This document shows positions 2,299 through 32,372 of a stretch of DNA of 64,000 nucleotides, in pieces. The notes beneath the pieces are model-generated. The model saw only the letters and a program-made list of their open reading frames with translations, was not told where the DNA came from and made no database searches. Position 1 is the stretch's first letter. Each line of letters starts with the position of its first letter. A program made the translations under genes and the position numbers. Origin of the DNA: Paragordius varius (taxonomy: Eukaryota; Animalia; Nematomorpha); assembly GCA_964247055.1 (NCBI GenBank), contig OZ176052.1, positions 11,966,001 to 12,030,000 on the forward strand, given 5' to 3'.

Positions 2299-2375
2299 CC
2301 TCCTCCGTTGGCCTTACACATCGTGTAAGTTTCCGGACATCACCACGTGGAGGTGGAGGTAGGATTTTGATGTCC
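2299..2375 (-). ncRNA. HDV-like (nested double-pseudoknot) self-cleaving ribozyme
   Basis: Minus strand reads GGACAUC AAAAU CCUACCUCC ACC UCCACGU GGU GAUGUCC GG AAA CUUACAC GAU GUGUAAG GCCAAC GGAGGAGG. P1 GGACAUC/GAUGUCC (7 bp); P3 ACC/GGU; L3 UCCACGU; P1.1 CC/GG; P4 CUUACAC/GUGUAAG; J4/2 GCCAAC; P2 CCU(A)CCUCC/GGAGGAGG. Order and lengths match the HDV fold. Confidence 0.88.
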
Positions 2376-5151: not shown

Positions 5152-8100
5152 ATGGATTCAAACGAAAAATTGACTAAATTTTTTGCAACATGTTGTCTAG
5201 CTGTTGTATTTATGAGTTGTTTTGTGGCTTTACCCCTCATGTATATCCAATTGTATCGAGTTAAAACAGAACAAAAGGAAGTAATTGGACAAATGTTAAA
5301 CACCTTGATAGAAGGCAAAGAGACAGTTAAAATTTTGGAGATGGAGTACGATCGTTTAAAGGTATAATGTTTTTATGTATTCTAAAGAAAAAGGCAGACT
5401 TGAGGAAGGCTAAACGATTAGCCCAATTAAAGCATAAAAATGGGAATGAGATGCCATCCAACAATAAAAAGAAACGGTCAATTGGTACACAAGATTATAT
5501 GATGAATCAACCTGTTATGCCTCCTTCATTAGATATTTCAATCATGGGAGATGAACCTATAATGCCTACAGCTCCGGAATATCATAAATCTGACATGATG
5601 TCACCAGATGATCATAGTCAACTAGTTGCTCATTACAAATCACCAATCAAAAATTCACCAAAATCTACTGGCGAAATTAGACCAAAAAGAACTTATTATC
5701 AAACATCAGGAGATGAACATGGTACTTCTGAAATTGAAGCTGGTAGAGATGACCATCGGTTCAGCCAACTTCTTGAGGAATTGGCCAAAACTGGGGGAGT
5801 GGTTGAAATCGGTATATATAAAATGACAGCTTGTGTTCTCTTTAATTTTTTATAAAAATAATTAATGTACATTTTTTTTTATTTTAAGATAATTTTTCAT
5901 ATAAATAGTATTTAAAGCTCTCTATTATTTTCATTAAATTAAAATTTGTTAAACATTATAGCAATTATGAATTTTTATTTTTATTAAAAAATCATTAATT
6001 TAAGTAGATTATATTTAAACAAAAATATGCATATACTATAGATTGTGGGTGTCCTAATGGTAACCCTGGCAAGCCAGGTCCACCTGGTCCATCTGGAAAG
6101 CCAGGCATACCAGGAATTCAGGGTGTAGATGGTACAGTAGGGAGACCAGGCTCTGATGGACAGCCAGGACCACCTGGGTCTGATGGAAAAATAGTGAGAA
6201 ATATAAATTAATGTTTAAATAATACCAAATAGTATATCATTATAATGAAACCTTTTGCAAAAAAATAATAGGGCTCACCAGGTCTCCCAGGCCGCAATGG
6301 AAATGACGGACGCGATGGACAACCTGGCCAACCCGGTAGGCCTGGGGTAGATGGAATTCCCGGACGCGACGGGCATCCTGGTCGAGATGGCCAAAATGTT
6401 ACCATTTTTTTTAATTATGAAAGGGTTTACCAGGCAAAGATGGAGAACCAGGAAGAGATGGTGATCCCGGTGTTTCTGGTGAACCTGGCAAAGATGGTTT
6501 AGATGGGAAACCGGGTAAAACAGGTAAAGATGGTGCATTGGGGCCCAAAGGTCCCAAGGGATCTAAAGGTATAGATGGAAGACCCGGACCTCAGGGAAGA
6601 GATGGCCTTCCCGGAAAAGATGGTGTAAACGGTAAAAAAGGGAGAGATGGAAAAAATGGTGTGGATAATCAATCTCCGGGTCCTGAAGGTGATGGTGGAA
6701 CACCAGGTCGTGATGGAAGTCCTGGAATAAACGGGATTGATGGTAAACCTGGAACTGATGGTATTCCTGGACGAGATGGAATTCCGGGCCGCAATGGAAA
6801 GGATGGGTTACCAGGAAATCCTGGTAATGATGCAGATCCAGGTAAGGATGGAAATCCAGGATCACCCGGAAAAGACGGGCGTCCTGGCAATCCAGGCAAT
6901 GACGGTAAACCTGGGAGATTTGGAAACAGAGTAATTTTTCAAATATTATATAAAGGGTCATATTGGAGAACCCGGAATACCAGGAAAAGATGGCAACCCC
7001 GGCATACCTGGAAGGGATGGACTGCCTGGAGCTGATGGAAAAACTGGCAACGATGGTAGAGCAGGGGAGGATGGATTACCAGTAATTTTTATTTAATAGA
7101 TAGGGACATGATGGAGATCCTGGAAGAGATGGAAGGGACGGAAAACCCGGAGATCGAGGCAGAAACGGTTTACCTGGAATCGATGGAAAACCAGGACCAG
7201 ATGGACGACCTGGTGCTCCGGGTCCCTCCGGTCCTAAGGGTCTAAAAGGTTCTCCGGGTCTTTCTGGGTCAGAAGGTATCTCTGGTCAGCCCGGAATAGA
7301 TGGACCGCCAGGACCTGCTGGGCAAATAGGACCGCCCGGATCATTACCTGGGAATCCTGGTAGACCTGGAAGTGATGGAAGACCAGGCAGTCCTGGAATC
7401 CCAGGATCCCCTGGTATCAGAGGCAATGGAGGAAAACCTGGAATTACAGGAAAAACTGGAGAAAAGGGAGATAATGGTTCCCCAGGTAGAGATGGGGAGT
7501 CTGGTCTGCCAGGCCTTCCCGGCAAAGATGGGGTTCCGGGCCCAAACGGTCCTCCAGGAAAGTGTTTGAATGAATGTCAAAATGATAATAGAAAAATAAG
7601 TTAGCAAAGACATAATTTTAGGTGTTTGTGGTGGTTCATTATTTGTGCATTGGGGTAAAAAGACTTGTAGTGAAGACGTTGTTGGTGTTAAAACCAATGA
7701 ATTAATTTATACTGGATATGTTGCTGGAGGGCACTATGCAGATTCATATCCAGGCGGTGGCCATAATTATTTGTGTTTACCGGAAAATCCAACCTTTGAT
7801 AAGTATATAATTCTTAAAAATATTCAGTTTTGTTGATGGTTTTTCCACTGGGACAAATGGTGAAGGGGCATCTAAACTATACGGTTCAGAATACAGGGTG
7901 TACGATGATGCCAGTCCATTTCTGGTTTATCAAGGATCTTTAAAACAAAAGCAAGCAGTATGTTCAGTTTGTTATTCGCCTAATGTTTGTCACTATATAA
8001 CACTACCCGGATTTACGGAATGTCCCTCAGGTTCACGCATTATATATAATGTTAGGATTTGTTAAAGAGTATCAGGGTTATCTTATGGCATTGAATAATA

Positions 8101-8276
8101 AATATTGTCGGTCTCAGTATATTTGCGTGGACCAATCACCAGATTACCATACTGAAGGTGACAGCACTGGAGATGGAAGCGCTCTTTATGTCGTTGAAGC
8201 CAAATGTGGAGCATTACCTTGCAACAGTTATGCCGATGGTTCAGAAATATCTTGCGTTGTTTGTGCAAAAATATAG
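5152..8276 (+). CDS. Collagen, 881 aa, 10 exons (5152-5361, 5388-5811, 6042-6193, 6272-6397, 6424-6930, 6956-7081, 7104-7599, 7622-7802, 7828-8030, 8056-8276): TM/cuticle-collagen-like N-terminus, ~150 Gly-X-Y triplets, short-chain collagen C4-type C-domain
   Basis: Exons sum to 2646 nt and the Gly-X-Y register is kept across every junction. N-terminal hydrophobic segment [22 protein letters not shown]; dibasic sites KKKR and RPKR; DCGC before the helix. C-domain [13 protein letters not shown]...[10 protein letters not shown]...[13 protein letters not shown]...LYGSEY...CSVC...[15 protein letters not shown]...YICVD...[13 protein letters not shown]...ISCVVCAK. Confidence 0.92.
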
Positions 8277-8782
8277 ACAATCATGAATTTTTGCGATTTT
8301 ATTTTTTATTATAATTTTTAACTAATTTAATTTTGAATAAAAATTATTTTATATAATGTATTTTTATGTTTTGAATTTTTTCTAGTTGTCCCTTTTAAAA
8401 TATTTAAATGTATAAACATTAACGAATTATATAAATGTCAACAAATTTATTAATTTAATTTAGTCTAGTAAATAAATTTTTTCATTATGCTAAAAAATGA
8501 TATTTGGTTTTCTATATTAATTTGATTTGACACACATAATTGGAATATCGCTCATGTCTCCGCATATTATAATAAAATTCAATTTTTCTATATCTGAGTT
8601 TTGCATTTTTTGAATGGCTGGGTGGATAAAAATATGTTGATATTAATAATTTTGAAACAACGTTTAAGCATTATTTTAATGTTTTTTTCCATTAATTGAT
8701 TGTATATTGAACAGTACTTGAAAATTATGTCAAGAAGTCTCTATGTTATAAATTTGTAGGCATATTTTTTCCCCTTATATAC

Positions 8783-9370
8783 TTAACACTTCGATTCAAT
8801 TTGGGGTATCTAAACACCCCAGACCAAATTAAAAATTAAAATTAAAAAAACTACTGAAGGAAACGGTCCTAATTTAAATTTATGCTTCTATCCCAATAAA
8901 AAATATATAAATAAGCTAAAATATCTTAATAAAATTTCGTTTTGAAAAAAAAGCTCCATGTCAAACTACTTCGACGCCATTTTGATTTTACAAAATTTTT
9001 GCAAAATTCGTCTTCATTTAATTTTAAGTGTAAAAATAAAGCTAATTTTTTATTTAAATTACATTTAACATTGATAGAAATAGAAAATGCGGTTTATTTA
9101 GTTTTATTTTTCAATTTAACCATTGCACACATGTCACGTTGACTAAATTTTTACCTTTCGGTTTCAGCAGAAAATAAGTAATATTGAGTATTTTTGAATA
9201 AATTTTTTTATATATTTCGGTTTATTAATGTTATATAAGTGCAAAATTTTGCCATGGTTTTAATTCCTTCCATATTTTTTAAAAAATTTAATTTTAAACA
9301 GGCCTGGGGTATTTAACTACCCCAATTTGAATCGAAGGACTAAAATGAATGTGTTGTATCCAAGTGTTAA
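8783..9370 (+). mobile_element. piggyBac-type MITE (family copy 1)
   Basis: TTAA-CACTTCGATTCAATTTGGGG ... CCCCAATTTGAATCGAAG-spacer-AAGTG-TTAA: TTAA target duplication and asymmetric subterminal inverted repeats; no coding capacity. Confidence 0.85.
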
Positions 9371-9789
9371 AGGTAAGAGTGGAAATACACGTTAGGTTTA
9401 AAGTGTAGAAAAAGCTTATATATTTTAATATCATCGTGCGGCCTGTATATATTTTTATACGGTCTCCCAATTTTTTAGCTGAGATTCCTGGGCATGTCCT
9501 ATAAAAAATACATTTATATGCATATTTAACTCAAATTAATAATTATAAAGGCGAAATACCGATATTAGGCTAGATCTTATCACTTCATGGCTTTTTCAAT
9601 TATCCCGATGACGTTTGTAGTTTTCTACATCAGAACCTCAAGTAATAGGCAATCTATTGTTTTGATTGGTGTTAATATAAATAAACTTTTTAGCATATTA
9701 TATCATATATTTAATATAATGTAATATTTCTACCTCTTTAACTTCAAATTTGTATTTTTTTTTCTAAAATACAAATTAATTATCTTATA

Positions 9790-10316
9790 TTAACACTTGG
9801 ATACAACACACTCATTTTAGTCCTTCGATTCAAATTAGGGTAGTTGGATAGCCCAGGCCTGTTTAAAATCAAATATTTTAAAAAGTATGGAAGGAATCGA
9901 AACCATGGCAAAATATTGCACTTATATAACATTAATAAACCGAAATATATAAAAAATTTTATTCAAAAATATTTGATATTACATATTTTAAGCTAAAACC
10001 GAGATGTAAAAATTTCGTCAACGTGACATGTGTCAAATGGTAAAATTAAAAAATAATACAAAATAAACCGCTTTTTCTATTTCTATCTATATTAAATGTA
10101 ATTTATATTAAAATTAGCCCAAGTTTTACCCTTAAAATTAAATGAAGACAATATTTTGCGAAAAGTTTGTAAAATAAAAATGGCGTCGAAGTAGTTTGAG
10201 ATGGAACTTTTTTTTCAAAACAAAAATTGGGATTGTTTCCTTCAGTAGTTTTTAAAAATCCTAATTTAAATTTAGTCTGGGGTATTAAAATACCCCAATT
10301 TGAATTGAAGTGTTAA
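9790..10316 (-). mobile_element. piggyBac-type MITE copy 2 (inverted); a further 5'-half copy starts at ~10416
   Basis: TTAACACTTGGATACAACAC... to ...TGAAGTGTTAA; internal sequence is the reverse complement of copy 1. Confidence 0.85.
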
Positions 10317-11112
10317 TAATGTAATATTTCTACCTCTGTTTAACTTCAAATTTGTATTTTTTTTAAAATACATATCAATTATCTTATATTAAAGGCAAAG
10401 GAATTTTTCCATCATTAACACTTTAATTCAAATTGGGCTATATAAATACCCCAAATATTCATTTTGACGTTTTAAAAAAATTACTGAAAAAAAACGGTCT
10501 TAATTTAAATTTATGCTTATATCCTAAAAATTAGATAAATAACCTGAAATTCAATAAAGGTTAGTTTTGAAAAAAAGTTCCATATCAAACTATTTAGGTT
10601 TTTATTTGGCAAAATATCCTGTCTATTTAATTTTAAATCTAAAATTTATTCTTATTTTTTATTTATATCTCAAACATTAATAAAAACAGAAAAAGTGGTT
10701 TATTTTTGTTAATCTGATATGTTTACCATCATAAATTTACACTGCGTCCAAAATCGGTAGGTATAAAAAAACTGACAAAATATTCTGGTAGGAAAATTTA
10801 TGAGGATTATGGTGCTTTGGGTTAAAAGTGATTTAAAAAAGATTTTTTATTATAATTTAATATCATTGAATTATTCATGCAGACTTGCAATTTAAGATGA
10901 ATTTTTGCGTACAAAAAAATATATAATTTTAAAAGCAAGCAATTTATTTGACAATTATCAATATAAATTATAATCGGTATTTTAGTGTTTAGAAAAAAAC
11001 TAGCCAATTGATTGTCCAAAAATTTAAGACTTTCGGAGGCCACATCAATTATTGTTAGCTCTTTCTCTAAAGCTTTATTTGATGTTTTTAGGATGGATCA
11101 TTTGGTTTATAA

Positions 11113-13151
11113 TAAAGTGACCAGATAGTTCGCAGTACAGTACTGGGTTTTCGAAAAAAACCGCGCCTGTACTGCGCTGACTTTTGTACTGCTTTTTGAA
11201 AGAATTTTTTTATAAATATGTTTTAATTACCATTTATTTATACAAGTTTTGTTTGTAAAATTCGATAGAGTACCCTTAGTTAAAATAAATAAATGGTTTT
11301 TTTGCTGTAAAAAACTATGGCCATTAATTTTAAAATTTTATTTTATGCTCTAATTATACATGAAGTTGAGTTTTCGACCGGTCATATCGCTTATGAATAC
11401 CGCCATTCGCGCAATCGCGGAACTAAAAATATCAGACTCCAAATTTAGGACAACCTTTCACTCAGGGTTTCCGCAAAAGCGACCTCAAAAATATACAAAA
11501 AATAAATTAATATTTTAGTAATTCTTTTGAAAATTCATTTTGTTTCATATAAGTTTCAGCTAAATTAAATTTATTTGAGTTTACTTTAATTATAATTATC
11601 AAACGGAAAATTTTTATATTTCCGCAACATATTATTTTTATTCTAGGAATAAAACAAATTTTTTAATGTTTTGGGTGGGAGGTAGGTATGTTCCTTAATT
11701 TTTTGCTTCCCTAAACTTAAATTTTAGCCAGTTTTCTTTTTATTCTTTTGTACATAAACAAATTTATAGACCTATTTTAATTTTGGCACACACATACACA
11801 CACACATAATAATTTTTTATTAATTCTTTTTTTAATTTTCTTTTCCGTGCCTTTTCCTATAAACAAAATATGGACTACGGAAAAAACACAACTCACAATA
11901 GATACCTTGAAAGCAATTGTAATAGTCAAAAATACAGAAGAAAATTGTGAAGCTTTTTTAGATAAAATTTCGCAAAACCATAAATTATTGGGACAAATAC
12001 ATAAATCTGAAAAATTTATATAATTTATTATTTTTAAATATTTTAATAATTATGTCACGTCATATATCATTGATTGGGTAGACTCCTATTTAAATTATTT
12101 CTAAATTTTACACTGTAGCAAAGTCAGCATTTGAATAATTTTCTATCCATTCACCTATCTTTTTTTCATCAACGCATAGTTTTACCTGCTGTCAAAAAGT
12201 AATTTTTTCTTAAATAGAACAGAACTTTCATAAGATCGTGTGTGAATGATTTTATATGCATGGCAACATCTTATAAAAACCAGATATATTGTTTCCCTCT
12301 ATTTTTATTATCATATATTGGTAATTATATTGTTTTTGACAGCATATTTTAAAACAATCATGCCATTATAATCTATATATTTATAAAAATGGAAAGTAGG
12401 GGCTTGGTGATCTGTTTCCGGGAAACCGGTAGATCCATTCAAATCCAAATGTCGAAAAAATATAATCATTAATGAATGCCCGACAATAGCTTCGCCCTTT
12501 TTTTGAATTAGGCCCCCAGTTCGGGCCTACCCCGTGTAAAAAACGGTTTTTTTCGAAAACAGAAGTCCAAAATCGGTCTTTGAGAAAATTTTCTGGAAAA
12601 CGTGTTGGACCATTCGATTTCAAATATAATATTTGTTTACTTATTTTCGATTGAGTCAACATAGTAGGCTCGCTTTTTTAATTTAGGCCCTCTTTTTACC
12701 CGCTCCTCCCGTAAAATGCCATTTTTCCAAAAATTCAAAAGTAATTGTTTGAATCTATTTTTCGCCCAAGTAAACAATATATTAGTATGAATGCACCGTT
12801 TTGAAATTCCTATGATATCATAGCTAATAAATAATGTTTCGAAATAATCCACATATGTGGATCATTTTATTGTCCCTTTTTTCAAATAGCCCCCCCAGTC
12901 CGAAGGACTTCCTCGGGCTGCGTAGCAGCACGAGATTTACGCTAGTATTATTATATATCCATATATATAACATATGATATAATTATATGTGCATACATTT
13001 ATAAATTTATTGTTGGATATTTTAATTGTAATGAGCTTATAAATAGTAAACAATATCATTTAATATAAAACACCGAAAATCCGGTTAAAAAATAGGCAAA
13101 GTATGTTTTAATTTTGTACTGCGCCAGGGTTTTAAATATCTGGTCACATTA
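11113..13151. mobile_element. Non-autonomous hAT element with a nested Helitron
   Basis: TIR TAA(A/T)GTGACCAGATA / TATCTGGTCACATTA; perfect 8-bp TSD GTTTATAA at 11105-11112 and 13152-13159. Same family at 46157 and 63283. Confidence 0.85.
12372..12945 (+). mobile_element. Non-autonomous Helitron
   Basis: Begins A|TCTATATATTTATAAAA and ends with a GC-rich hairpin region (AGTCC-GAA-GGACT; GCGTA...TACGC) then CTAG|T; no TSD. First ~350 bp homologous to the 52672 end of the second Helitron. Confidence 0.7.
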
Positions 13152-14050
13152 GTTTATAATATATTTATATTTAGCAAAATAGACACAAATTTCACCATTT
13201 TACAATTACACTGTGCAACAAAATATGGGGTCAATTTTCTGGACTCGATTTCTAAATATTTTCTGATTCCTTATAGTATTGCGATCAGATTTGCGCAAAA
13301 TATTTTTTTACTTACCCAGCTCGTTTTCGAGATATGGGACTTTTTCCATATTTGGACATATCCAAAATTTTCTTGTTTGTAAATATTTTTCGCTATGTAA
13401 ACAAATAATATGTGGCTTACATAAGTATTTTTACAAGAAATTACCAATTTATCTTCAAAATAAAAAAAAATTTACTCAAAATATCCAATACTTTTTGTTT
13501 TAGGGGGCAAAAACCCTCAAAAATTGGGTAATTTAACATTTTTTCACACAAATATTTTTTATCAATTTATTAAATAAAAACAAACTTTATTATATGTTCT
13601 TGGATGTTAATAATGTTTGTTTAGGTATAAATATCACTTTGTGATAGCTTTGTGGACTTTAATTTTTAAAAATAAATTTAATTTTTACAGCTTTTTTGCT
13701 GTTTTTTTTATGTAAAAAATGATTTATTTTACTCAGCTGTAAATACTAATTTCATTTTTTCATCTGAAATTTTTAAATATTTACCATATACAGTGACGGT
13801 AAGGAGCAAGCCTTACACCCTTTTCTGGATACCTGGATGATGTGTTCAAGAATACTAAATTTTATGCCTTAAAATATAATCCTAAGCAAGTAGGATGATA
13901 GTCGGGTTGTTATGTTTAATAATTTACCTTATATTAGTTAGCTTATGAAAATATAATATTATCCTTCTCTCTTACCTTAGTGCATAATACACCTTTGTCC
14001 TTGTTACGCTAAAAATGTATATTATCTTGGTTGTGAATGCTTTTATCTAA

Positions 14051-15151
14051 GGGCCATGTGAACTTTTAATAATCCGAGTGAATGAGCCTTCCTCATCTTG
14101 TTGAGATGGAAGAATTTTTAATCCTGGTTCAGGGTTAAGGTTATTACAAAAGCCGATATCTCGAGAACTAGGGAAAATTTTTGGAATCTGAAAACTCTAT
14201 TAGCCTAAATAAAGTAAATTCAATATATGTATATGGTAGGTTATGGAAATTTTGGACATGTATCAAAAAATATTTTTCGGGCAGATGCTTACTAAAGGTT
14301 ATAATGATTTAGTGCTTTATTTTTATATATTTAGGCAAGAAATGGTAGTTAGTTGAAGTTTATACAAGTTTAACAGAATATTTAGAAAATCATTGTATAA
14401 CTACTGATATGTTTTTTCAAGAATTTAGAATATGTCATCATATAATTTTTTCCTCACTTGAAACCATTCTAAATGGTAAAATCATCAGGAATACTATCGA
14501 GTATTTTTAAATTTGGTTTATTTTAGACATGAAACTCTGCTACTTTTTAATTATAATCGGAGTATTCGGTAATACATATTTCTATAAAAGCGATAGGTAA
14601 CATTGATGAAAATGAGTTAGCAAACTTTATATCAGAAGATCAGACAACACTTATATTGAATAGCCATCAGACAGGAGTAGATCAGAGAAACGATTTAATT
14701 TGACATAATTTTATTAATAATTTATTTTTACACATTAAATGAATATATTTTATAAATATTTAAATATTGATCATTTCTTCGGCTAAAGCCTCCCAGACCT
14801 TAAGCTCTTCGTTATTGGTAAATTTACGGATCCATAAAGAGGCACAGATATCTAGAAATTATTTAAACAAATTTTAAAAAGACCCGCATATAAATCGCGT
14901 GTAACTGTTTTCATCATATTGATAAAAATACAAAACAAGCCTTCGCCATTGCTAAAATTATTTACGGTATTCGTAAAGATGGATGCTATAAATTATTTGA
15001 ACAAAATGACCTAAATCGCGTGTAGACCTGTTATTCATCATACTGATAAAAAATTTCAAAACTCCCACCTCAAAAACTCAATCACCTCCCTCAATATGCT
15101 TCCTCATAATCCAGGTGAATGAGGTTGAAAATTGGCTCATTTACATGGCCC
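14051..15151. mobile_element. PIF/Harbinger-like element nested in the long-TIR element
   Basis: TIR GGGCCATGT(G/A)AA with TAA TSD on both sides. Remnants resemble a transposase C-end (+; ...HQTGVDQRNDLI) and a MADF-like fragment (-; SLWIRKFTNNEELKVWEALAEEM) in convergent orientation. Confidence 0.7.
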
Positions 15152-15378
15152 TAAATATTAATGCAACATTGCTTTAAAACTATATATAATGCAATATATT
15201 TTATACACGATATATATAATTTTTTATGCTATAATAAATTCTTTTTTTCGCTTATTACACGGGTAAAAATATTGTATCTCACAGCAAAAATCTATGTAAA
15301 CTATTTAGAGGGGGGGCGTTTTTGGGCCGTTCGACTAGGAAGCACTCATAGAGACGGTGAATATGCAAAAAATGCTTT

Positions 15379-15640
15379 TCGTATCGTATCGTCTTTGTGT
15401 AATGGCTAGCCATTGTATCCGTATGGAAGCTGTCTGTAATATTTGCGATCCTGCCAGGCGTTATCATCAATGTTGGCAACATTTATATCATTATTTATTG
15501 TTTTTTTCCAGTTAGATGTTGGTCTACCCCTGTTATTGTTACCTTCGAGATGTAGTGTAACTTATTGGGGTGGAATAAATTTTGCATCCGCTTTTTTATG
15601 TTCATTAGTTTTTTCTCAATTAAATCTGTCATCGGCCAAA
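15379..15640 (-). mobile_element. 3' fragment of an RTE-type retrotransposon
   Basis: Minus translation EGNNNRGRPTSNWKKTINNDINVANIDDNAWQDRKYYRQL* resembles the RTE C-terminal RGRP...W...WQDR motif, followed by a short (TACGA)n tail. Confidence 0.6.
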
Positions 15641-16557
15641 GGTAAGAGAGAAGGATATTATATTTTTATAAGCTAACTAATATAAGGTCAATTTAAACAT
15701 AACAACCCGTCAGTCATCCTAAATTTTAAAATAAACAAATACTTGGTTAGGATTATATTTTAAGGCATAATAGTATTGTTGAACACATCATATATGGTAA
15801 ATATTTAAAAATTTCAGATGAAAAAATGAAATTAGTATTTACAGCTGAGTAAATTAAATCATTTTTTACATAAAAAAACAGCAAAAAAGCTGTAAAAATT
15901 AAATTTAATTTTAAAATTTAAAGTCCACAAAGCTATTACAAAGTGATATTTATACTTAAACAAACATTATTAACATCCAAGAACATATAATAAAGTTTGT
16001 TTTGATTTAATAAATTGATAAAAAAATATTTGTGTGAAAAAATGTTAAGTCACCCAATTTTTGGGGGTTTTTGCCCCTAAAACAAAATGTATTGGATATT
16101 TTGAGTAATTTTTTTTTTATTTTGAAGATAAATTGGTAATTTCTTGTAAAAATACTTATGTAAGCCACATATTATTTGTTTACATAGCGAAAAATATTTA
16201 CAAACAAGAAAATTTTGGATATGTTTAAATATGGAAAAAGTCCCATATCTCGAAAACGAGCTGGGTAAGTAAAAATTTTTTTTACGCGAATCTGATCACA
16301 ATACTATAAGAAATCAGAAAATATTTAGAAAATCGAGTCCAGAAAAAGTTGTGTCACAGTGTTATCTAACAGAATATTAACATTCCGATTTTTTCAGATT
16401 TTTGGAAAAAATACATAGTGTGATCATCAAAGAACTGTCTGCTAAAACGAACTTTGATATAACTATTGGTTTAGTCATATATAAAACCTATATTCTAACC
16501 ATAATACGATTTTTTATTTTCACAACATATGTTCTTATAATATATTCATGTTATAGT

Positions 16558-19500
16558 ATGGTTGACTCGTTTTTAAAATATTCAGTTGTTGATTATTTGG
16601 TTCCACTTTTACTGTGCTTTGTTTTTACGTATCTCATTATACCAGTAACCTTTAAATTTTATGGACCATTTTCAAGAAAATTAATATTTTTAAATTTAAG
16701 TAAAATAAACCTAAATTTTAGTAAAATGGCCTCTATTTGTTGATTTTACGCATCCTGAAAGATTAGGCTTGATTGGTGCAAGCAACTTTTATTTGCATCC
16801 AAGCACCACTGTCAAACTTGGAGTTTGGTAAGTTTTACTATTATTCGTAGGCATATTTTGCCAGAAGATTTAATTTCACGAATAAATACGGCAGAAGATT
16901 CTACACAATACTTAAACTCTGGACACCCCATTATCCTGTATTTACATGGTAATGCAGGGACTCGGTTATAATATATTTAATTATATGTATAGGGCTGGTT
17001 GGCATCGTATAATGCTCTACAAAATATTTTCAAAGTTGAATTATCACGTTATTTGCTTTGATTTTCGAGGTTAGCGAAACCTTTTTTATATGATAGGTTT
17101 TGGAGATTCGATAGGAATACCTTCTGAAACCGGAGTCGTAAAAGATTCTCAATTTGTTTATGATTGGATAAAATCTTTATCGGGGAATAATTCTGTAATA
17201 TTGTGGGGGCATTCACTCGGAAGTGGGTAATTTTTTTTTATAGTTTTTGTCTTACTCCAAAACTCTATGCAACTAATCAGTTACAAAGTAATATCAGTGT
17301 TAAGAAATCGAATCTTAAAAATTCAAAATAATTTACCATAAAATTTTCAGGCACTCGGTTTTATATCGTGGGACATAAACCGACAGAATCTGATTTTTGG
17401 ACTGGTTAATTTATAAAATCATTGATGTTTCGGATAAATTTGAATAAGAACCTATTACATACATTTTCAACTGTAAAACGGACAAAACAGATTATGTACA
17501 ATGATATTGGAGCCAGAGTTCTTCCAGTAAATTTTATTTACACAGTGAATTTTGCTGTTTTTGGAATGAAAAAAAGTTGCTATCTTCTGGCTGAATCTCT
17601 AATGATACGAGTAAACTTTGCTTTATCAAACCGCCAACAAATAACTGTGATAAATACTTAATTTATTTTATTAAATGTTCTGACGTGGTATATAACATTA
17701 CTCATTAGAAGATGTTAACATAAGAAATAGGAGCTTTTTGCAATCCAAGATTAAAACATAAAGTGAAAGAGAGGCTTCCATTTTTTAATATTGGTTTTTT
17801 GTTTAACATAGAATTTATAAACCAAATTAAAAAAATTAGTTGTAAAAGTCGTCTTTCCTTAACTGTATTTATTTTATTATACAGTGATATAAAGTTCTTT
17901 ATGTTTTTAATCATGTATGGACAGTTAAGGATTGGGATTTTTTAATTCATAGTATTGTAAAAATGAAAATGGAATCTCAAGTCTACGAATATTATTCTGA
18001 ATTTCAAAGAGATTGTAAATTTTGCTAATATTGTTGATAAACTACATGTTTTTTATTTAGACTAATTCATTAGTTAATAATTAATTATTTATAGAATCTA
18101 GGAAATAATCATTATAAGTGAGCTTAATTAAATATGCTTGTTTTTTACGAAAAACTAGTGGAAGCAAATAGTATTGTATTAAAGTAAAACTGCTTGGATA
18201 TTTCAACAATATTATTACTAAATGGTCCCAATCAAAATTGATGTTGATAAAGTAGCGACCAAATTAATTTTATCCTTTTGTATTTCTCATAAATGTTTTC
18301 GATTAAAAAATCGTTAAAATTGTGTTCAGCTCTTTCAAAACATTTTTTATGATCATAATTTTAATTAACACAATTTCCTATAAATACCTATAAATATTTT
18401 AAAGATTATAAACATTTTTTTACGTAAATTATTTGTTTAGCGTCACAACTCGCTTAGCCCGACACTTGATAGAAGATGGGCACGTTTTGCCTGGTGTCGT
18501 TTTAGAGGCGCCTTTTACTAATATTGCTGACGCGGCTATTTCACATCCCATAAGTCGAGTAATATGCTTTATTTTTTTAAAAAAATTACCTTATAGTAAA
18601 AATTAAATTGTAAAGAAAAAACGAAGAAACACATACTTTTTGAACCTTGATTTTTAGTAAAACCTATCGTTTTAGGTTGCAAAATAAGGGATACAGATGT
18701 AAATTGGTAAATTCTATGAAATATTTAACAGTATTTTAAAGGTTATATCAAAATCAAGATTTAAAAAATTATGGATATCTTATCCAAAAAATAAGTAGTC
18801 TTTTTTACACTTTGTCTGTTTGCAAAAAAACTTACCTCCTATTTTTTCACCCATAATATATTTTAGCTTTACCGCAAATTTCCCTGGTTTGATCAATACT
18901 TTCTTGAACCCTTAAAACGGAATGAACTTTTATTCCAAAGTGATATCAAGTAATAATATGTCGATATCCTTTAACTTTTTTGTTTTATATTAAATTATGA
19001 TATGTAATTAGATTGTTATTATTTATTTAAAACAGGGGTTTTCAACACAGCTCACAGATTAATTGCAGATTGCAAAAAAATTTCAAAATACAATTTATTT
19101 TCTATTATTATTTCCTTTAACATTGATTATGATCATTTAAACCTGCTTTTGTTTATTATTTTTCACTGCAAATTTGTTTCAATATTCATAAAAAAATAAT
19201 AAACCCTATTAAAAATACCACAAATGACAATTTTTTGCAATTTTAATGTGTTATAAAATAAATTAAATATGAAAGTTAAAACTAACAGATCCCAATTGAG
19301 ATGGGAAAGGATAATTTTTTAATCTTTATGTTAATTAATTGATATATAAAACATTATATATTCCAAGCATATATTTTTGTTTAATTAAGAATTTTAATAA
19401 ATATAAACTAGTAAAAAGGTATAAATTGACGGTTTATCGATACTTTAAATCTTATTTTTTTTGATGTACGGCCCATAAAGCCATTCTTGTTTGACGCCTT

Positions 19501-20877
19501 TGTTTAAATGTAATTTTGGCACTTGATTAACTTAAAAAAAATGATAGATATATTCAATTGATTTAAAATATATGAAATTGTTTTTTAAAAGAATTATATA
19601 TGCTAAAATATTTTATAGCACACAAGAAATGCACCTCAATCATTTATACAAAAATGATGATTTGTCAACTTAATGCACTTAAATTTTTATTACTTATAAA
19701 ATTACTTATATAATTTTTTGTTAAGAAGTATAATTATACTGAAAAATCGATTTAATCGATAAAATCGAACGGTTAATCCATGTATATTAAATAACACAAA
19801 TAATGAGTTTATCATGTGTTATAGCAGGCTTTCTAAGTTTTATGGATTTTTTTGTTAATTTTATATTAAAAATTCTTTAAGGTACATAAAATAGTGAACA
19901 GAAAAAACTTTATATAATAATACATTCCAGTGTATATCCTATTATATAATTAAATATTAGAAAATATTAATTTATGGTGATTTACTTCATAATGTATTAG
20001 TTGTGTAAGGGTGTATTACAATTAAGTTAATTTATGACAATGAGTTGTTAAACTTTTTATCTAATTTTTCGGTTTTATATTGTTAAATATTTTTAAATTA
20101 ATATCAAAGTAAATTTTTAAATAAATATATTTTTTTATATTTCCTATATACTATTGCAATGATTTTATTTGAAGCATCAAATACCTAAATTGTCCATTAC
20201 TAATTTTACATGCCAAAGATGACCATGTTGTGCCTTATAGTCTAGGCTACAAAGTATATACATTTTTGTACCATTAAAACCTAAAATTTACATAATAAAA
20301 AAAGATTAAAAAATTACGCTTAGTTTACCATATTTCACACGATGCAAATTTTAATCTTTTAAATTTTAAAATGTTAAAAAGTAGAAAATTATTGATTTTT
20401 CAAGTGCCTTGTTTTTATGAAATTTATATTAAAATAGGACTTTATTTTTAAAAATCCCTTAGATCAAAATTATATATGACAATTTTAAATAAATGGTAAA
20501 CAAGGCTAAAAACAATCAGTTAATCCAATTTCATCATAAAGCACATTTTTTTCTAATTTGATTTTTGGGATTAATTGAAATGTCAAAAACGAATTTAAAA
20601 GTTTTAATCTTTTTTTTCTATCTTCATTACATTTACTTATTTTTTATGATGATGATATTTTAGTTGTATGAGATTGCCAAGGAAAGTGCCCCTCTGCATC
20701 ATAAAAGTTTGATTCAATTTGAGAGTTTTGAAGCTCATTATCGATTGGGACATAAACACATTCATTCACATCCAAATTTACCCAATATTGTCAAGTTGCT
20801 TTATTATTTTAACTTCCTTTTTTAGGTTATTTGTCAAACAGTGTTGTGGTCACAAGAAGTCTACTAATGAAATCTAA
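16558..20877 (+). CDS. ABHD12: Alpha/beta hydrolase, lysophosphatidylserine/monoacylglycerol lipase ABHD12-like, 343 aa, 10 exons (16558-16699, 16722-16827, 16851-16964, 16993-17069, 17097-17226, 18441-18558, 18867-18949, 20175-20253, 20664-20794, 20826-20877)
   Basis: Exons sum to 1032 nt. N-terminal TM; [35 protein letters not shown] (Ser), [19 protein letters not shown] (Asp), LGHKHI (His). Confidence 0.93.
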
Positions 20878-21718
20878 TAGTTTTATTTTTTTTATAGTTG
20901 TATTGAAAACACATGTAGAAAATACTCAAATATTTATTTAATATATACTATTTATTGTATATTAAAAAACAATTAAATAAATTATGTTTTTATCATTACA
21001 TTTTTCAACGGAATATATACCGGAAAATGGCTACGATGTGCGAAAAATTCCTTTTTTTCTTAGGTTAGCACGATTGTTAACAATTAACATTTTTAAACAG
21101 GTTTTGAATTACTTAAAACGTTAAATAGTTTTAAAAATACGTAAAAAATAATTTAAAACAGTGGGTTTTTTATTGAATAGAGCATAGAAATCTATATGTA
21201 TTTGCATAATGGTAAAAATAAAATTTATCTATTTATTTGATATCGTTTTAGCCCGGCTGTCTTTATTATTTGATTAGATGTTACCGTTCAAAAAGTATAA
21301 GCAGTATAGGATAACCAAAAACCATTTATGACGGAAATCAAACAAATATTAATAAATTGAATATCTCCTATGGAAGTTATCACAAAACATTCATTTATTA
21401 CGTTATATAAGAATTATAAAATGAGAAAAATGGCTGTCACAAACAAAAACCACAATATTTTGTCATAAGGATCAAATATATGTTTAATAATAAAATTAAA
21501 TTTAGAAAAATGATATAGATATTAATCGAATGAATTTATATGTATCGATTACATGTATTATTGGTGAAAACATTGGTAATGTTACGATACATTGGCTAAT
21601 ACATGAGAATCAGACTAGTTATGATGGAAAAAATTGAGCTTGCTATGTGCACAATTAAAAACGGCAAAACTAGTGTGAGAAAAATAAGCATCCCGAAAAT
21701 TGAAAAATATTGCTTTTT

Positions 21719-24700
21719 TTATAAGTTAGAGTTCAAAAAACTGATGGGTGTAAGGGCCTCCTTCAAAGTTTCCAAATTGTCGGTCCAGCTCTTTTGTCGC
21801 GAAAGCAGGAAAGATTGTTTCGTATTGGTGGCAGTGTCAAACAGGGTGTTGAGAAACGTTTCAGAGTGTGAGCGCCGATGTCCAAGGAAACTCGTTTCAT
21901 CTTTGGAGTTTAGGTCAAGGCTTTCACACAAACTCTCAAACAGGGAAGTTGGTGTACCAGCCCTAAGACATGCATCCAGGTCGAAAGAAACCCCAAACGA
22001 TAAAAGTTTATCCAAAAGTGAATGGGTGATGGGATCCTGATCGGCACTTGATTTAGTTACAATTTCTAATCCATCCGTTTCACTCTTTTCCAATTTTTCT
22101 TTGCTATCCATTATTTCGATGGGGATTAGAGGGTCTTTTGGTAATGGTGATATCTCAGTACACCTTTTATCATTTTGTTGTTCGAATGCAGTTATGACAT
22201 TATCATTATTATTGCTAAGGTCAAGACTGTCTACTAACGTTTTCCGTTGTCTGACTGATTGTTGGGAATGATAATCTTCCTCCATCGTTTCAGCTATCTT
22301 TTCCATGTTATTCAAGATGGGTTTTTTGCTTTTGTCCAGCTTGAATGGGAAAAACATGTTTGGTGTTCCATCACCCGTCCGTTGTTTTCGACTGTTTACG
22401 GCTTTAAGGGAAACCTTTTTCAAATCATAAGCCCAACCAATACATGCCATGGCATTGATAAAAAGTGTCGTAAAATTGAGCGTAACCCCAAACTCCGATG
22501 TGGAGTAATCGTGAGGAAATGTATGATGATAATTGTGAAAACCTTCACCGATTGCAAATATGGACACGGGGAAAGATTCTATACGTACAAATAACATGAG
22601 ATGATGGAGTAAAAATTTAAAAATTATATATAAGATAAAAAGTAAAAGATTAATAATTGATTATACAAGAACCCATATTTTTAACTTCTATTTTTACAAT
22701 ATTCTATCAGTTTGATTTGTTAAATTAAAAGATGTAAATTTGTAAGACCTTAATTTTATCTATCACAATTTTAAACATATAGGTTATATAGATATAATCA
22801 CGTATTAATAAATATGTAAAATATAAATTTTTTTTATTAAACTGCTGCGCTCTAAACAACGCTTGATAATTTGTTGAATTAAAATGCCAAGGCATAACAG
22901 TGTTGCATAAAAATATCATAGAAAACATAAAAATAAAAATATTTTTGTAAATTTCAGAAGCTAAATCGCATAAATATATTACCTATTATAAATAATTGAT
23001 ATGGACTAAACATAAATATTTAAATTTTTATGCATACTTTATCCATTTTTTCAAGACTACAGACCTCGTCATTTGTCATATTAAAACATCATGAAAAACA
23101 TTAGATGTTAACTAGTTTAGTAACTATATTTTACACATTTTTGAGAATCTACATAATTCAAACAATTTATAATGTGTTTATGTGTGTGACCCACATTATA
23201 ATAAAAATGTTTCATCATATGTGAGGACAATATAACAATTCGAATTTCGGATTATGATTAATTTACCGTACATTGTTTGTCAGGTTTAGGATAAAAACTC
23301 AAATTTATTTTCATAATTATAATTTAAAAAAGAAAGGATTCAATTTCGACCTTAAATCTGCCAGTTTTATCAAACTGGCATTGAAAGATAGTTAAATTGT
23401 ATGGGGCAAAATGTAAGAATCATTTATTAAATAAGATAAATGTAAAAAATATTTCATTTAAGGCATCAGAAAATATGCGCATAAAGTGATATCTGATATT
23501 TTGATTAATTACACACTTCTTATTATATCACTATAACGATACTGCATAAATTACATTTATAACAGTCAAAGAGTAAAAAAACAAAAAAACAATTTATTTT
23601 GTCTGAAGAATAGATCTATTAAGAAGCATTTTAAAATTTGTTCTTTATTTAACATACTTCAAATTATGCATTAAATCTATGCACATTAGGTAGATATTTA
23701 AAAAGTGCACGCATTAAGCTATTATAAAGCAAAAACAGTTAATTCTAATTAATAGATTGTCAAAAAGAAATGCAAAAAAAGGTATATATTGGCATTTAGC
23801 CTTAACAAGAAGTTGGGATGGATAATGTTGTCTTTTTTACATGTGACGTTATTAAAATAATGATACGCATATAATGTCAAGAAAATAACTACTATAACTA
23901 AAACGGATTTCCTTAATCCTGTTTTTAAATATAAAGTTACCTGCAGGGTTTATGCGATAATCATAAGGTTTGTTTCCAAATAAGTGAGCAAGTGAATTGA
24001 CTAGCCAAGTTGCATGTAGTACAAGCACATACCTCAAAATGACCGGGACAAAAAAGGCTTTTGAAAGTGACTCTCCCCAAAACAACATTGGAATGATCAT
24101 TGGTAATATTAGGCCAATAAGTAAAACAAGGGGTAAGTAAAACCTTATATAGTTAGAAATAATAAAGTTACTTTTTCTGAAATTTTAAAACTGGATTATT
24201 TTCTAAATCCTTTATAGATATATTTTTGCCTTTGCTTTTCACTTCATTGTGTTTCCTAACAAGTAACCAGCCCATATGTGCAAAGAAAAAGCCACGTTTA
24301 GCGTTATGTGGATCTGCATGAGTTTCAGAATATTTATGATGCACGCGGTGATCTCGACACCATTCTATTGCACTATTCTAAAAAATATATGACAAAAATA
24401 CCTGTCCAGCGGCAGTATTAAATATCATGAGAAGAATTTGTAAAGGTGTTTTAGCTTGATACGATCGATGACTCCATAAGCGATGCGCTCCAGCAGTTAT
24501 ACCCAACCCGGTTATAGCATACATAAATAAAACTTAAAAATTATAAATAAAAATTTACAGAACAATAAGGTGGCCCATCCTGTGTGAAACAAGAGATATA
24601 ATCCGTACAAAGCCATGCAATGTAATACAATGTACCAATAAACATTAAACCAAACGATATAAAATTTGTTTGGAGCGCTTGCGGAATCAACGTAGCTTTC

Positions 24701-29756: not shown

Positions 29757-32372
29757 TGTTAAGTTAGATCTTACTGTCGTAGACACAAACGCACCTATAT
29801 AATTGTAAACAATTATAACTCTTTGTGATACACCTAGTTAATGTTAATTGTAGCTTCAAGCAAATTAGCTAGTATATAATTGCTGTATTATAATATCACA
29901 CATACATGTTTTGATTTCTGATATTTAAAAAATTTCTGTTTAATATATCTTTACTTCTATTATTCTGGGTTATATAACTTTACTTCCATTATTGGCGTAG
30001 TAATGAACCTGGCAAAAATTTCTCTGGAAAGTTTTGATGAAAAGGAAAATTTTGACCGATACGTTTCGTACATTCAGCGAATGTTAGCTGCAAAAAACAT
30101 GACGGCAAACGATAACAATTGCAAGACGTTATTCCTCGCCTAAGCAGGAATGTCGGTCACAAAGAAATTCGAACAATTCCTGTTCCCAAATTCACTGGAT
30201 AATACCTCCTGGCCGGACATCATTGAAGCCGGCAGGAAAATCTACGAATCGAATAGGACAAACATATTCCAGGCCAGATTCAATTTCGTAAAACTCCGTC
30301 GGAAAGAAAATGAAACATTTACGGAATTTCTGTTACGAGTCAAAACCGAAGCCGCAAAATGCAATTTCAAGCTCGACATCGATGAAAAAATGCGCGACGT
30401 GTTCATTGCAGGCCTGGGAGTGGAAAAATTATAACTAGATTTATTCACTAGATTCCCCGATGCATGTGGGGAAACGAAGCTGTAACGCTCAAACAAGTGG
30501 TAAACATTGCTCTTAACTATGAAAAAGCACATCAACTAACAACAATAGATGGCCAGATATTGCAGACTACAGTTGGGAAATACCAAAACATGTGTCGATT
30601 CTGCGGGTTAAGTCATGCACCCGGCAGATGCCCAGCTTGGGGCAAACAATGTTATAAGTGCCAAGGCTGGAATCACTTCCAACCGTGCTGTAAGAAGAAA
30701 AGGATTAGCAACGTTCAGCATGTCGAATCTGGAGCCACCCCCAAGATAGCAATAATAATAAATGGCAAACCAATACACATGATTATAGACACAGGTTCAA
30801 GCGTATCTATAATCGATTGTCAAGCGTGGGAAAAAATTGGGAAGCCCGAGTTGCAACAAACAGGCCCAGATTTGTATAGCTATGGTGGACAAAGAATCAA
30901 TTCCAAGGGTAGTTGTATGGTCACGGTACAATGCGATGGTGAAACAAAATCTCTGGCGTGTATGGTTGTAAGCGGCAAGAAGGCCCCAGCAATTCTTGGT
31001 TGGGATTGGCTACAAGAATTCCCGAATCTCAAAAAACAAATATCTTACAATTATTACACGTCGGACACCCCGGATTCAAAGCAATGTACGAACAACCAAA
31101 AAAAATAGTCTTTTGGCACAATATGGAAAGCGACATAAAAAAGTGGGTAGATACGTGTAAAAAGTGTCAAGAAAACCGTCCGAGGCGAAAACTTAATCCC
31201 ACATACAATTGGAACACGAATACAGCAATATGGGAGAGATTACATCTAGATATAGCAGGCCCGATAGACAATTATTATTGGATATCTTATTGACAGTTAT
31301 TCTCGATGGGTCGAAGTTAAACTATCGAAAATGATATCGACCAAAAATATATTAAATTTCCTAGACGAATGTTTCAGTCGATATGGATCTCCAATAATGA
31401 TAGTAACCGACAACGCGTCTTACTTTACATCTGAGGATTTTAAAAAAGTCACGGAAACGGGAAACATTAAACATGTAACATCAGTTCCCTATCATCCAAA
31501 AACTAACGGAATGGTGGAACGAGTAATATATACCCTAAAAACACATTATCGGTCAGCAGAAGACGATGACCCACATTCCAAAATAAATAACACGCTTTGG
31601 GGATACCGCACTAACATACACAGTGCTACAAATACATGTCCCGCTCAACTTTTCCAAAAACGTACCTACCCTATCCAATCACATGGCTACAATATAAACA
31701 AACAGACTTCTTAGACGATGTACAACCTAATCATGAATACCATGAAAACGAAAAAGTATACATAAAAAATGAACTATCGAATGGTTGGCGAGAAGGAATT
31801 GTAAATAAACGACTCGGATTACTCTCATATGAAATACAAGATGATAACAAAATCATCCGAAAACACGCAGACCAACTGAGACCAAGGGAAGGAGGCGAAA
31901 GAATAATGGGTAAGACAATTTCATCCGAAGAAACTCCACCATCGCATGACCTATATGTTAGGTCCCCTACTGCCACGTCCGAAGACCCGACCTTACCTCC
32001 GCCACCCTCGGAACCCATCATTGAGTTGCCATCCCAACAAACACCCACTATAGCACCTACCACTGACGCTCATACAGAACGGCGATACCCTACACGAATC
32101 CGACAACCACCACATAGATATCAAGGACAGGGAAAGAGTGTTAAGTTAGATCCTACTGTCGCAGACACAGACGCACCTATATAATTGTAAAAATTATAAC
32201 TCTTTATGATACACCTAGTCAATGTTAATTGTAGCTTCAAGCAAAATAGCTAGTATATAATTGCTGTATTATAATATCACACACACATGTTTTGATTTCT
32301 GATATTTAATAAATTTCTGTTTAATATATCTTTATTTCTATTATTCTGGGTTATAAAGCTTTACTTCCATTA
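29757..32372 (+). mobile_element. Gypsy-type LTR retrotransposon, internally deleted (gag, protease, integrase; no RT/RNase H), pseudogenised
   Basis: LTRs 29757-29991 and 32139-32372 (about 12 differences in 235 bp); 5-bp TSD GGCCT; PBS TGGCGTAGT (29993-30001, tRNA-Ser-like); PPT GGGAAAGAG. Gag Cys cluster CRFCGLSH...CYKC...HF..CC; protease IDTGS; integrase HVGHPG..C..C, DIAGP, TDNAS, YHPKTNGMVER. Confidence 0.92.

Follow-up and report, generated by a model that had tools for sequence, protein, structure and literature searches.

Probable spliceosomal introns of 22 to 31 nucleotides in three genes of the horsehair worm Paragordius varius

The DNA analysed here is a 64-kb stretch of the genome of the horsehair worm Paragordius varius (Nematomorpha), referred to below as the window, and the segments examined are 15 very short putative introns (micro-introns) in three of its genes. 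These genes, with the length of the predicted products in amino acids (aa), are as follows:

5152..8276, plus strand: collagen gene, 10 exons, 881 aa, reconstructed as a spliced open reading frame (ORF)
16558..20877, plus strand: ABHD12-like alpha/beta-hydrolase gene, 10 exons, 343 aa
21722..24748, minus strand: stearoyl-CoA desaturase (SCD) gene, 5 exons, 528 aa

The three reconstructed genes contain 22 introns, 15 of them micro-introns of 22-31 nt and seven longer (78-1362 nt). The micro-introns form a discrete length class (median 25, mean 25.3 nt; n = 15), separated from the remaining introns by a gap between 31 and 78 nt (n = 22). An earlier note on this DNA had described 15 micro-introns, and all of them were located at the coordinates and with the lengths that it gave, every one starting with GT and ending with AG; its total of 28 host introns takes in other genes besides these three, which yield 22. 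Uninterrupted ORFs of 881, 343 and 528 aa are obtained only once both the micro-introns and the longer introns are taken out, and any single micro-intron left in place leads to a premature stop (15/15), which bears out the claim that each is needed for the frame or the motifs. We consider it very probable that what is seen in all 15 cases is a genuine spliceosomal intron of the GT-AG type, reduced by shrinkage to 22-31 nt in a nematomorph genome, a reading that draws on genomic DNA and on sequence comparison.

The desaturase gene allows this comparison to be made across animals. Removal of its four introns (26, 24, 28 and 1362 nt) gives the 528-aa ORF:

24533..24558, minus strand: micro-intron, 26 nt, phase 1, same alignment column and phase as introns of Gordionus, Ixodes, Xenopus and Tubulanus
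24378..24401, minus strand: micro-intron, 24 nt (a multiple of 3), phase 0, its own final TAG in frame, same column and phase in the four species
24144..24171, minus strand: micro-intron, 28 nt, phase 2, same column and phase in the four species
22579..23940, minus strand: long intron, 1362 nt, phase 1, same column and phase as a 3357-nt intron of Gordionus

The last exon is an open frame of 312 aa, which matches the annotated acyl-CoA desaturase of the horsehair worm Gordionus sp. m RMFG-2023 far better than anything else in the database; the search with this exon returned no protein from the window's own species. Pfam searches on single exons mostly gave matches that were too weak, FA_desaturase being recognised on one SCD exon (the other match, on an exon of the ABHD12-like gene, is described below). 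The spliced protein and the annotated Gordionus protein are 58% identical overall, visibly more so in the catalytic domain, and their alignment has zero gaps at all three micro-intron junctions. The C-terminal extension of about 200 aa (21722-22400, minus strand; Gordionus locus L001, 10600-11165) is common to both worms, at about 30-40% identity, and is absent from the other animal desaturases matched. SCD loci were then available from Gordionus montsenyensis, Ixodes scapularis, Xenopus tropicalis and Tubulanus polymorphus, whose annotated proteins were mapped exactly onto the DNA, with these lengths for introns 1, 2 and 3:

Ixodes: 3785, 1534 and 1559 nt
Xenopus: 2518, 511 and 3229 nt
Tubulanus: 777, 837 and 340 nt
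Gordionus: 44, 54 and 111 nt (locus L001, 6209-6252, 6384-6437 and 6644-6754)
Window: 26, 24 and 28 nt

All three micro-introns occupy identical alignment columns, with identical phases (1, 0, 2), in the five species, and exons 2 and 3 measure 131 and 206 nt in 5/5. As column and phase are common to all five, the three SCD micro-introns go back to ancient bilaterian spliceosomal introns that shrank, and are not new insertions. The Gordionus montsenyensis gene resembles that of the window in intron positions, phases, exon lengths and the long fourth intron, and differs from it in that its first three introns are longer (44, 54 and 111 nt against 26, 24 and 28 nt); the final shrinkage step at the three sites thus took place after the split from the Gordionus lineage. 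In a synteny check, the 6-kb flanks of the Gordionus SCD gene contained no ABHD12-like or collagen match.

That the SCD segments match canonical introns in position and phase also bears on the idea that the segments leave the message, or are skipped, by a non-spliceosomal route, be it cleavage of the IRE1/XBP1 type, cleavage of the tRNA-endonuclease type, or translational bypassing. The unconventional intron of XBP1 is of similar size, 23-26 nt, but the ends of the segments are uniformly GT and AG in 15 cases spread over three unrelated genes, and, judged by ends and positions, a route of this kind seems to us hardly credible.

The collagen gene provides a second line of evidence. Its product consists of an N-terminal membrane anchor, a Gly-X-Y region and a Cys-rich C-terminal domain, and the 881-aa ORF emerges on removal of nine introns, seven of which are micro-introns (in the lists, an alternative pair is another frame-keeping GT..AG pair within 18 nt; SNP, single-nucleotide polymorphism):

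5362..5387, plus strand: micro-intron, 26 nt, phase 0, GT..AG, retention giving a stop at aa 72; basis, ORF continuity alone
5812..6041, plus strand: ordinary intron, 230 nt, phase 1
6194..6271, plus strand: short intron, 78 nt, phase 0
6398..6423, plus strand: micro-intron, 26 nt, phase 0, Gly-X-Y continuous
6931..6955, plus strand: micro-intron, 25 nt, phase 0, Gly-X-Y continuous, no alternative pair, SNP at 6940
7082..7103, plus strand: micro-intron, 22 nt, phase 0, Gly-X-Y continuous, no alternative pair
7600..7621, plus strand: micro-intron, 22 nt, phase 1, at the start of the C-terminal domain, no alternative pair, SNP at 7606
7803..7827, plus strand: micro-intron, 25 nt, phase 2, no alternative pair, domain alignment crossing the junction
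8031..8055, plus strand: micro-intron, 25 nt, phase 1, domain alignment crossing the junction

The Gly-X-Y repeat runs unbroken through the micro-intron junctions of the helical region (6398, 6931 and 7082), homologues of the C-terminal domain align through the junctions at aa 740 and aa 808, and a single retained intron brings a stop a few codons later. The inner C-terminal micro-introns are not common to the domain homologues compared (scorpion, sea spider and a third protein), which share at most the intron at the domain start; for 7600-7621, distant homologues have a phase-1 intron at most 2-3 residues away, an approximate match only. The domain itself (7622-8273, plus strand) has no Pfam match and more than 1000 relatives in the protein library; in the relatives looked up, from scorpion, sea spider and bivalve, the domain is often repeated in tandem, with no collagen part attached. 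Protein fragments derived from transcripts were sought across the junctions of exon 7829-8029, and there were no candidates.

Five public runs contain the stretch, and the four examined are DNA runs, representing at most 3 samples and 2 studies; in all four, coverage extends over spacers and introns, and splice joints are absent. Contigs assembled independently from each of the four runs contain the micro-introns (one contig extends over 6676-8580, another over 6296-8809), and they diverge from the window by 1-5%, so that they come from other individuals. Among the best-supported collagen variants listed, the spliced frame places 17 of 20 exon SNPs at the third position of a codon and makes 16 of the 20 synonymous, compared with 2 in either of the other frames. 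None of the seven collagen micro-intron lengths is a multiple of three, and the genomic frame consequently shifts at every one of them; the codon-position periodicity of the SNPs changes frame at each micro-intron exactly as predicted, and it holds only with the segments removed. The same listed variants include three indels in the collagen gene, all of them intronic: one at 6259, in the 78-nt intron (6194-6271), which also carries 2 SNPs between individuals, and two in micro-introns. In 6398-6423 a SNP (6402) and a 1-nt deletion (6405) leave 25 nt in other individuals, and in 7803-7827 two SNPs and a 1-nt deletion (7808) leave 24 nt. Seven of the listed variants lie in 171 nt of micro-intron and 20 in 2646 nt of exon, a density several times higher in the micro-introns. 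The micro-introns are non-coding, evolve faster than the exons and tolerate a 1-nt change in length. Just past the collagen stop codon, a 16-nt deletion polymorphism at 8429 was seen in contigs of two runs.

Small A/T-rich insertions are of a kind that long-read errors can produce, and the earlier note had itself named assembly artefacts absent from the raw reads as one way in which its claim might fail. The segments, however, carry their own SNPs in independent contigs from four DNA runs: they are not assembly artefacts. Sequencing insertions, or frameshifting debris of decaying pseudogenes, are in addition at odds with GT..AG ends in all 15 cases, with a synonymous-site pattern of polymorphism that points to purifying selection on the spliced frame, and with the placement of three segments exactly at ancient intron positions; we give an origin of this sort next to no weight. 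The same DNA runs bear on removal at the DNA level in the soma, as occurs with ciliate internal eliminated sequences or in nematode programmed DNA elimination. The size range does recall the eliminated sequences of Paramecium, and the DNA runs need not stem from somatic tissue; against this, the joined (deleted) form was seen in none of the four runs, the boundaries are GT..AG and not TA..TA, and ordinary introns occupy the orthologous positions in other animals, all of which makes somatic elimination extremely improbable.

The third gene would encode a hydrolase of 343 aa, for which the name ABHD12 is our own attribution. The motifs HGNAG, GHSLG, DD and H follow one another in the expected order; one exon gave weak matches to Hydrolase_4/Abhydrolase_1 (E about 0.02, below Pfam's cut-off), and the neighbours in the protein atlas are S33 hydrolases, with scores at the level of a lead only. 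The ORF is obtained by removing nine introns:

16700..16721, plus strand: micro-intron, 22 nt, phase 1, no alternative pair
16828..16850, plus strand: micro-intron, 23 nt, phase 2, no alternative pair
16965..16992, plus strand: micro-intron, 28 nt, phase 2, no alternative pair
17070..17096, plus strand: micro-intron, 27 nt (a multiple of 3), phase 1, in-frame TAG right behind the donor
17227..18440, plus strand: long intron, 1214 nt
18559..18866, plus strand: intron, 308 nt
18950..20174, plus strand: long intron, 1225 nt
20254..20663, plus strand: intron, 410 nt
20795..20825, plus strand: micro-intron, 31 nt, phase 2, one alternative pair (52 nt)

The exact limits of the segments deserve separate consideration, as some micro-introns might be real but wrongly delimited, the true donor or acceptor being a GT or AG close by and the intron 32-59 nt long, or the first exon of the collagen model might lie outside the gene. 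An alternative pair is available for 6 of the 15: three for 5362-5387 (32, 44 or 59 nt), two for 6398-6423 (53 or 59 nt), one other acceptor for 8031-8055 (37 nt), two for 17070-17096 (36 or 45 nt), and one each for 20795-20825 (52 nt) and 24378-24401 (21 nt). Even these alternatives do not exceed 59 nt, and they would delete Gly-X-Y triplets or conserved residues; the other acceptors of 17070-17096, for example, would remove the start of the FGDS stretch. The boundaries of 24378-24401 are fixed by the orthologue alignment and by the conserved exons of 131 and 206 nt, and the remaining 9 of the 15 have no alternative pair at all. We therefore regard misplaced limits, or an extraneous first exon, as unlikely, while granting them more weight than any of the rival explanations discussed above.

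Regarding the signals by which such introns could be recognised, the micro-introns conform to a reduced splice-site consensus ('GTa' and 'AG'), the counts coming from a small sample (n = 15). After the initial GT, position 3 is taken by A (9) or T (6) and position 4 by A in 10/15, and the 3' end reads TAG (9), AAG (5) or CAG (1). The base composition of the micro-introns (19% G+C) is far from that of the exons (36-46%), the longer introns having 22% and the window outside exons about 25-30%; the AT-richness reported in the earlier note is thus borne out. So is the near absence of a polypyrimidine tract, the longest pyrimidine run having a mean of 4 nt against 3.1 nt in random GT..AG segments of the window, and a clear tract being present only in 20795-20825. 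The proposed TAA branch site, on the other hand, does not survive: TAA occurs in 80% of the micro-introns and in 38% of the random GT..AG segments (G+C 19% against 35%), no more than their low G+C would yield, and since an A/T content of 81% accounts for the enrichment, TAA was rejected as a branch-site motif. Branch sites of classical appearance are found only in 20795-20825 (TTAAC, with a run of pyrimidines behind it) and 24144-24171 (CTAAC), and the 3' halves of the micro-introns are A-rich. Two of the 15 lengths are divisible by 3, and both of these micro-introns hold an in-frame stop.

Several points weigh against reading the 15 segments as spliceosomal micro-introns. The evidence for the junctions comes from genomic DNA and sequence comparison, and in the RNA-labelled runs listed under the same species label none of the sequence words of the stretch, the collagen's included, is present. 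The junctions of the ABHD12-like gene are supported by ORF continuity and motif order only. The first collagen micro-intron, 5362-5387, lies in an unconserved region, and an ATG within it opens the downstream frame (ORF 5367-5855), which makes a collagen model without exon 1 possible. A branch site cannot be identified above the base composition, with n = 15 the shortage of lengths divisible by 3 does not reach significance (P = 0.08), and 36 further variant rows lie beyond the best-supported collagen variants on which the polymorphism counts are based.

If the segments are spliceosomal introns, as we favour, their removal could be achieved via intron definition by an ordinary U2-type spliceosome. 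Recognition would depend on little at the 5' end (GT, then A or T, then mostly A at the next position), on A/T-AG at the 3' end and on the steep fall in G+C from the exons (36-46%) to the micro-introns (19%), with the branch adenosine presumably located within the A/T-rich 3' half and no pyrimidine tract involved. One and the same spliceosome would handle both the micro-introns and the introns of 0.2-1.4 kb of the same genes; a spliceosome specially adapted to tiny introns, as the earlier note proposed, is possible. As every retained micro-intron introduces a premature in-frame stop, messages from which one has not been spliced would be expected to be cleared by nonsense-mediated decay. The size class itself may be the outcome of deletion towards a lower limit, and the presence of introns of 0.2-1.4 kb in the same genes suggests that it mirrors the intron evolution of the lineage and not a compaction of the genome.

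The setting of the three genes is indeed repeat-rich and gene-poor, with introns of 1.2-1.4 kb in these genes and, close to them, ORFs of retroelements and an element capped by a ribozyme; its appearance agrees with the figures of 63.8% repeats and 26.9% G+C given in the Gordionus genome preprint. Just downstream of the collagen gene, at 8647-9100, lies an extremely high-copy element; there, each of the four DNA runs shows a jump in summed contig depth, from a few hundred to 10^5-10^6, and many of the joints are rearranged. Other features of the window are:

2299-2375, minus strand: self-cleaving ribozyme drz-agam-1, of the type of hepatitis delta virus (Rfam, 41.2 bits, full length, above the gathering score)
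30464-31105 and 40853-41416, plus strand: retroelement ORFs with aspartyl protease and zinc-knuckle matches, belonging to two elements of the long-terminal-repeat type in patches of higher G+C at 30-32 kb and 40-44 kb
58272-59426, minus strand: a series of ORFs in several frames

Within the window, none of the seven longer introns recurs, and none has convincing terminal inverted repeats; the notion that they are micro-introns inflated by transposons is neither supported nor excluded.

A number of reports describe introns of comparable size in other organisms. In a survey of 51 animal genomes (Molecular Biology and Evolution, September 2026; PMC13644364), introns below 30 bp were confined among animals to the myxobolid Myxozoa (medians 22-27 bp) and Dicyema japonicum, being known besides from ciliates and microsporidia; the claim that the micro-introns fall far below the usual animal minimum agrees with this restriction to two groups. 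The survey ties ultra-short introns to parasitism and tiny bodies and foresees further cases, and Nematomorpha go unmentioned in its text (PMC13644364). The introns of D. japonicum and of the myxobolids (Henneguya, Thelohanellus, Myxobolus) are likewise GT-AG, with medians of 22-27 bp; their 5' signal is down to about 'GTa' and their 3' signal to little beyond AG, a pyrimidine tract is lacking, and the AG is preceded by A residues. Their positions are conserved, as are the exons on either side, and parasitism is common to all three hosts (PMC13644364). The host of the window differs in belonging to Nematomorpha, within Ecdysozoa, and in being large-bodied with full tissues, and its micro-introns share genes with introns of 0.2-1.4 kb, none of the 22 falling between 31 and 78 nt.

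Flatworms offer another parallel. The microintrons of Opisthorchis felineus, Schistosoma and Echinococcus, which peak at 37 and 90 bp, are clustered and 5'-biased, lack a pyrimidine tract and are missed at default annotation settings, and they too form a discrete short class beside introns of about 3 kb in large genomes (PMC6530080). In the earlier note, the coexistence of micro-introns with a genome swollen by transposable elements was set against the compact genomes of other hosts; the coexistence is indeed seen, but the contrast is weaker than was supposed, as flatworms already combine both (PMC6530080). Their 5' bias is matched in the ABHD12-like gene, whose first four introns are all micro-introns, whereas the flatworm peak of 37 bp exceeds both the mean (25 nt) and the maximum (31 nt) of the window.

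The introns of Paramecium and other ciliates measure about 25 nt, and those of Stentor 15-16 nt; in Paramecium, selection through nonsense-mediated decay has shaped the pattern of what follows when an intron is retained. The likeness to the window lies in the size range, in the contrast in G+C and in the fact that retention always breaks the frame or brings in a stop. For the tiny introns of ciliates, one study treats the G+C contrast as a likely recognition cue (10.1101/2021.08.05.455221). Ciliate genomes differ in being gene-dense and in having almost only tiny introns, while the window combines its micro-introns with long introns and repeat-rich spacers.

With regard to Nematomorpha themselves, no paper on intron size was found in the literature searched, Cunha et al. 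2023 (the first nematomorph genome) being outside reach, and the word 'intron' is absent from the Gordionus genome preprint, from a four-species nematomorph comparison and from a Hox study. The micro-introns are thus of a known kind, ultra-short spliceosomal introns, in a phylum for which we found no report of them. More speculatively, and with considerable doubt on our part, Nematomorpha might be a third independent animal lineage with introns below 30 nt, represented here by a large-bodied ecdysozoan whose genome, a few hundred Mb in size, is rich in repeats; shrinkage would have been recent and lineage-specific, and the low BUSCO scores of horsehair worms, like the loss of universal animal genes reported for them, would be due in part to faulty annotation.

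If this were true, the horsehair worm would represent a third origin, once again in a parasite, yet in one that is long, fully tissued and repeat-rich, and body size and genome compaction would then be separable from intron minimisation. The desaturase gene has introns at identical sites that range in a graded series from thousands to hundreds of nucleotides, then to 44-111 nt and to 24-28 nt, and with it a single phylum suffices to test how short a spliceosomal intron can become. From a methodological point of view, default aligners and gene finders skip introns of this size, and the low BUSCO scores and the reported gene loss would in part be artefacts for this reason. The default minimum intron sizes of annotation and completeness pipelines would break such genes, which bears directly on the claims of gene loss made for Nematomorpha.

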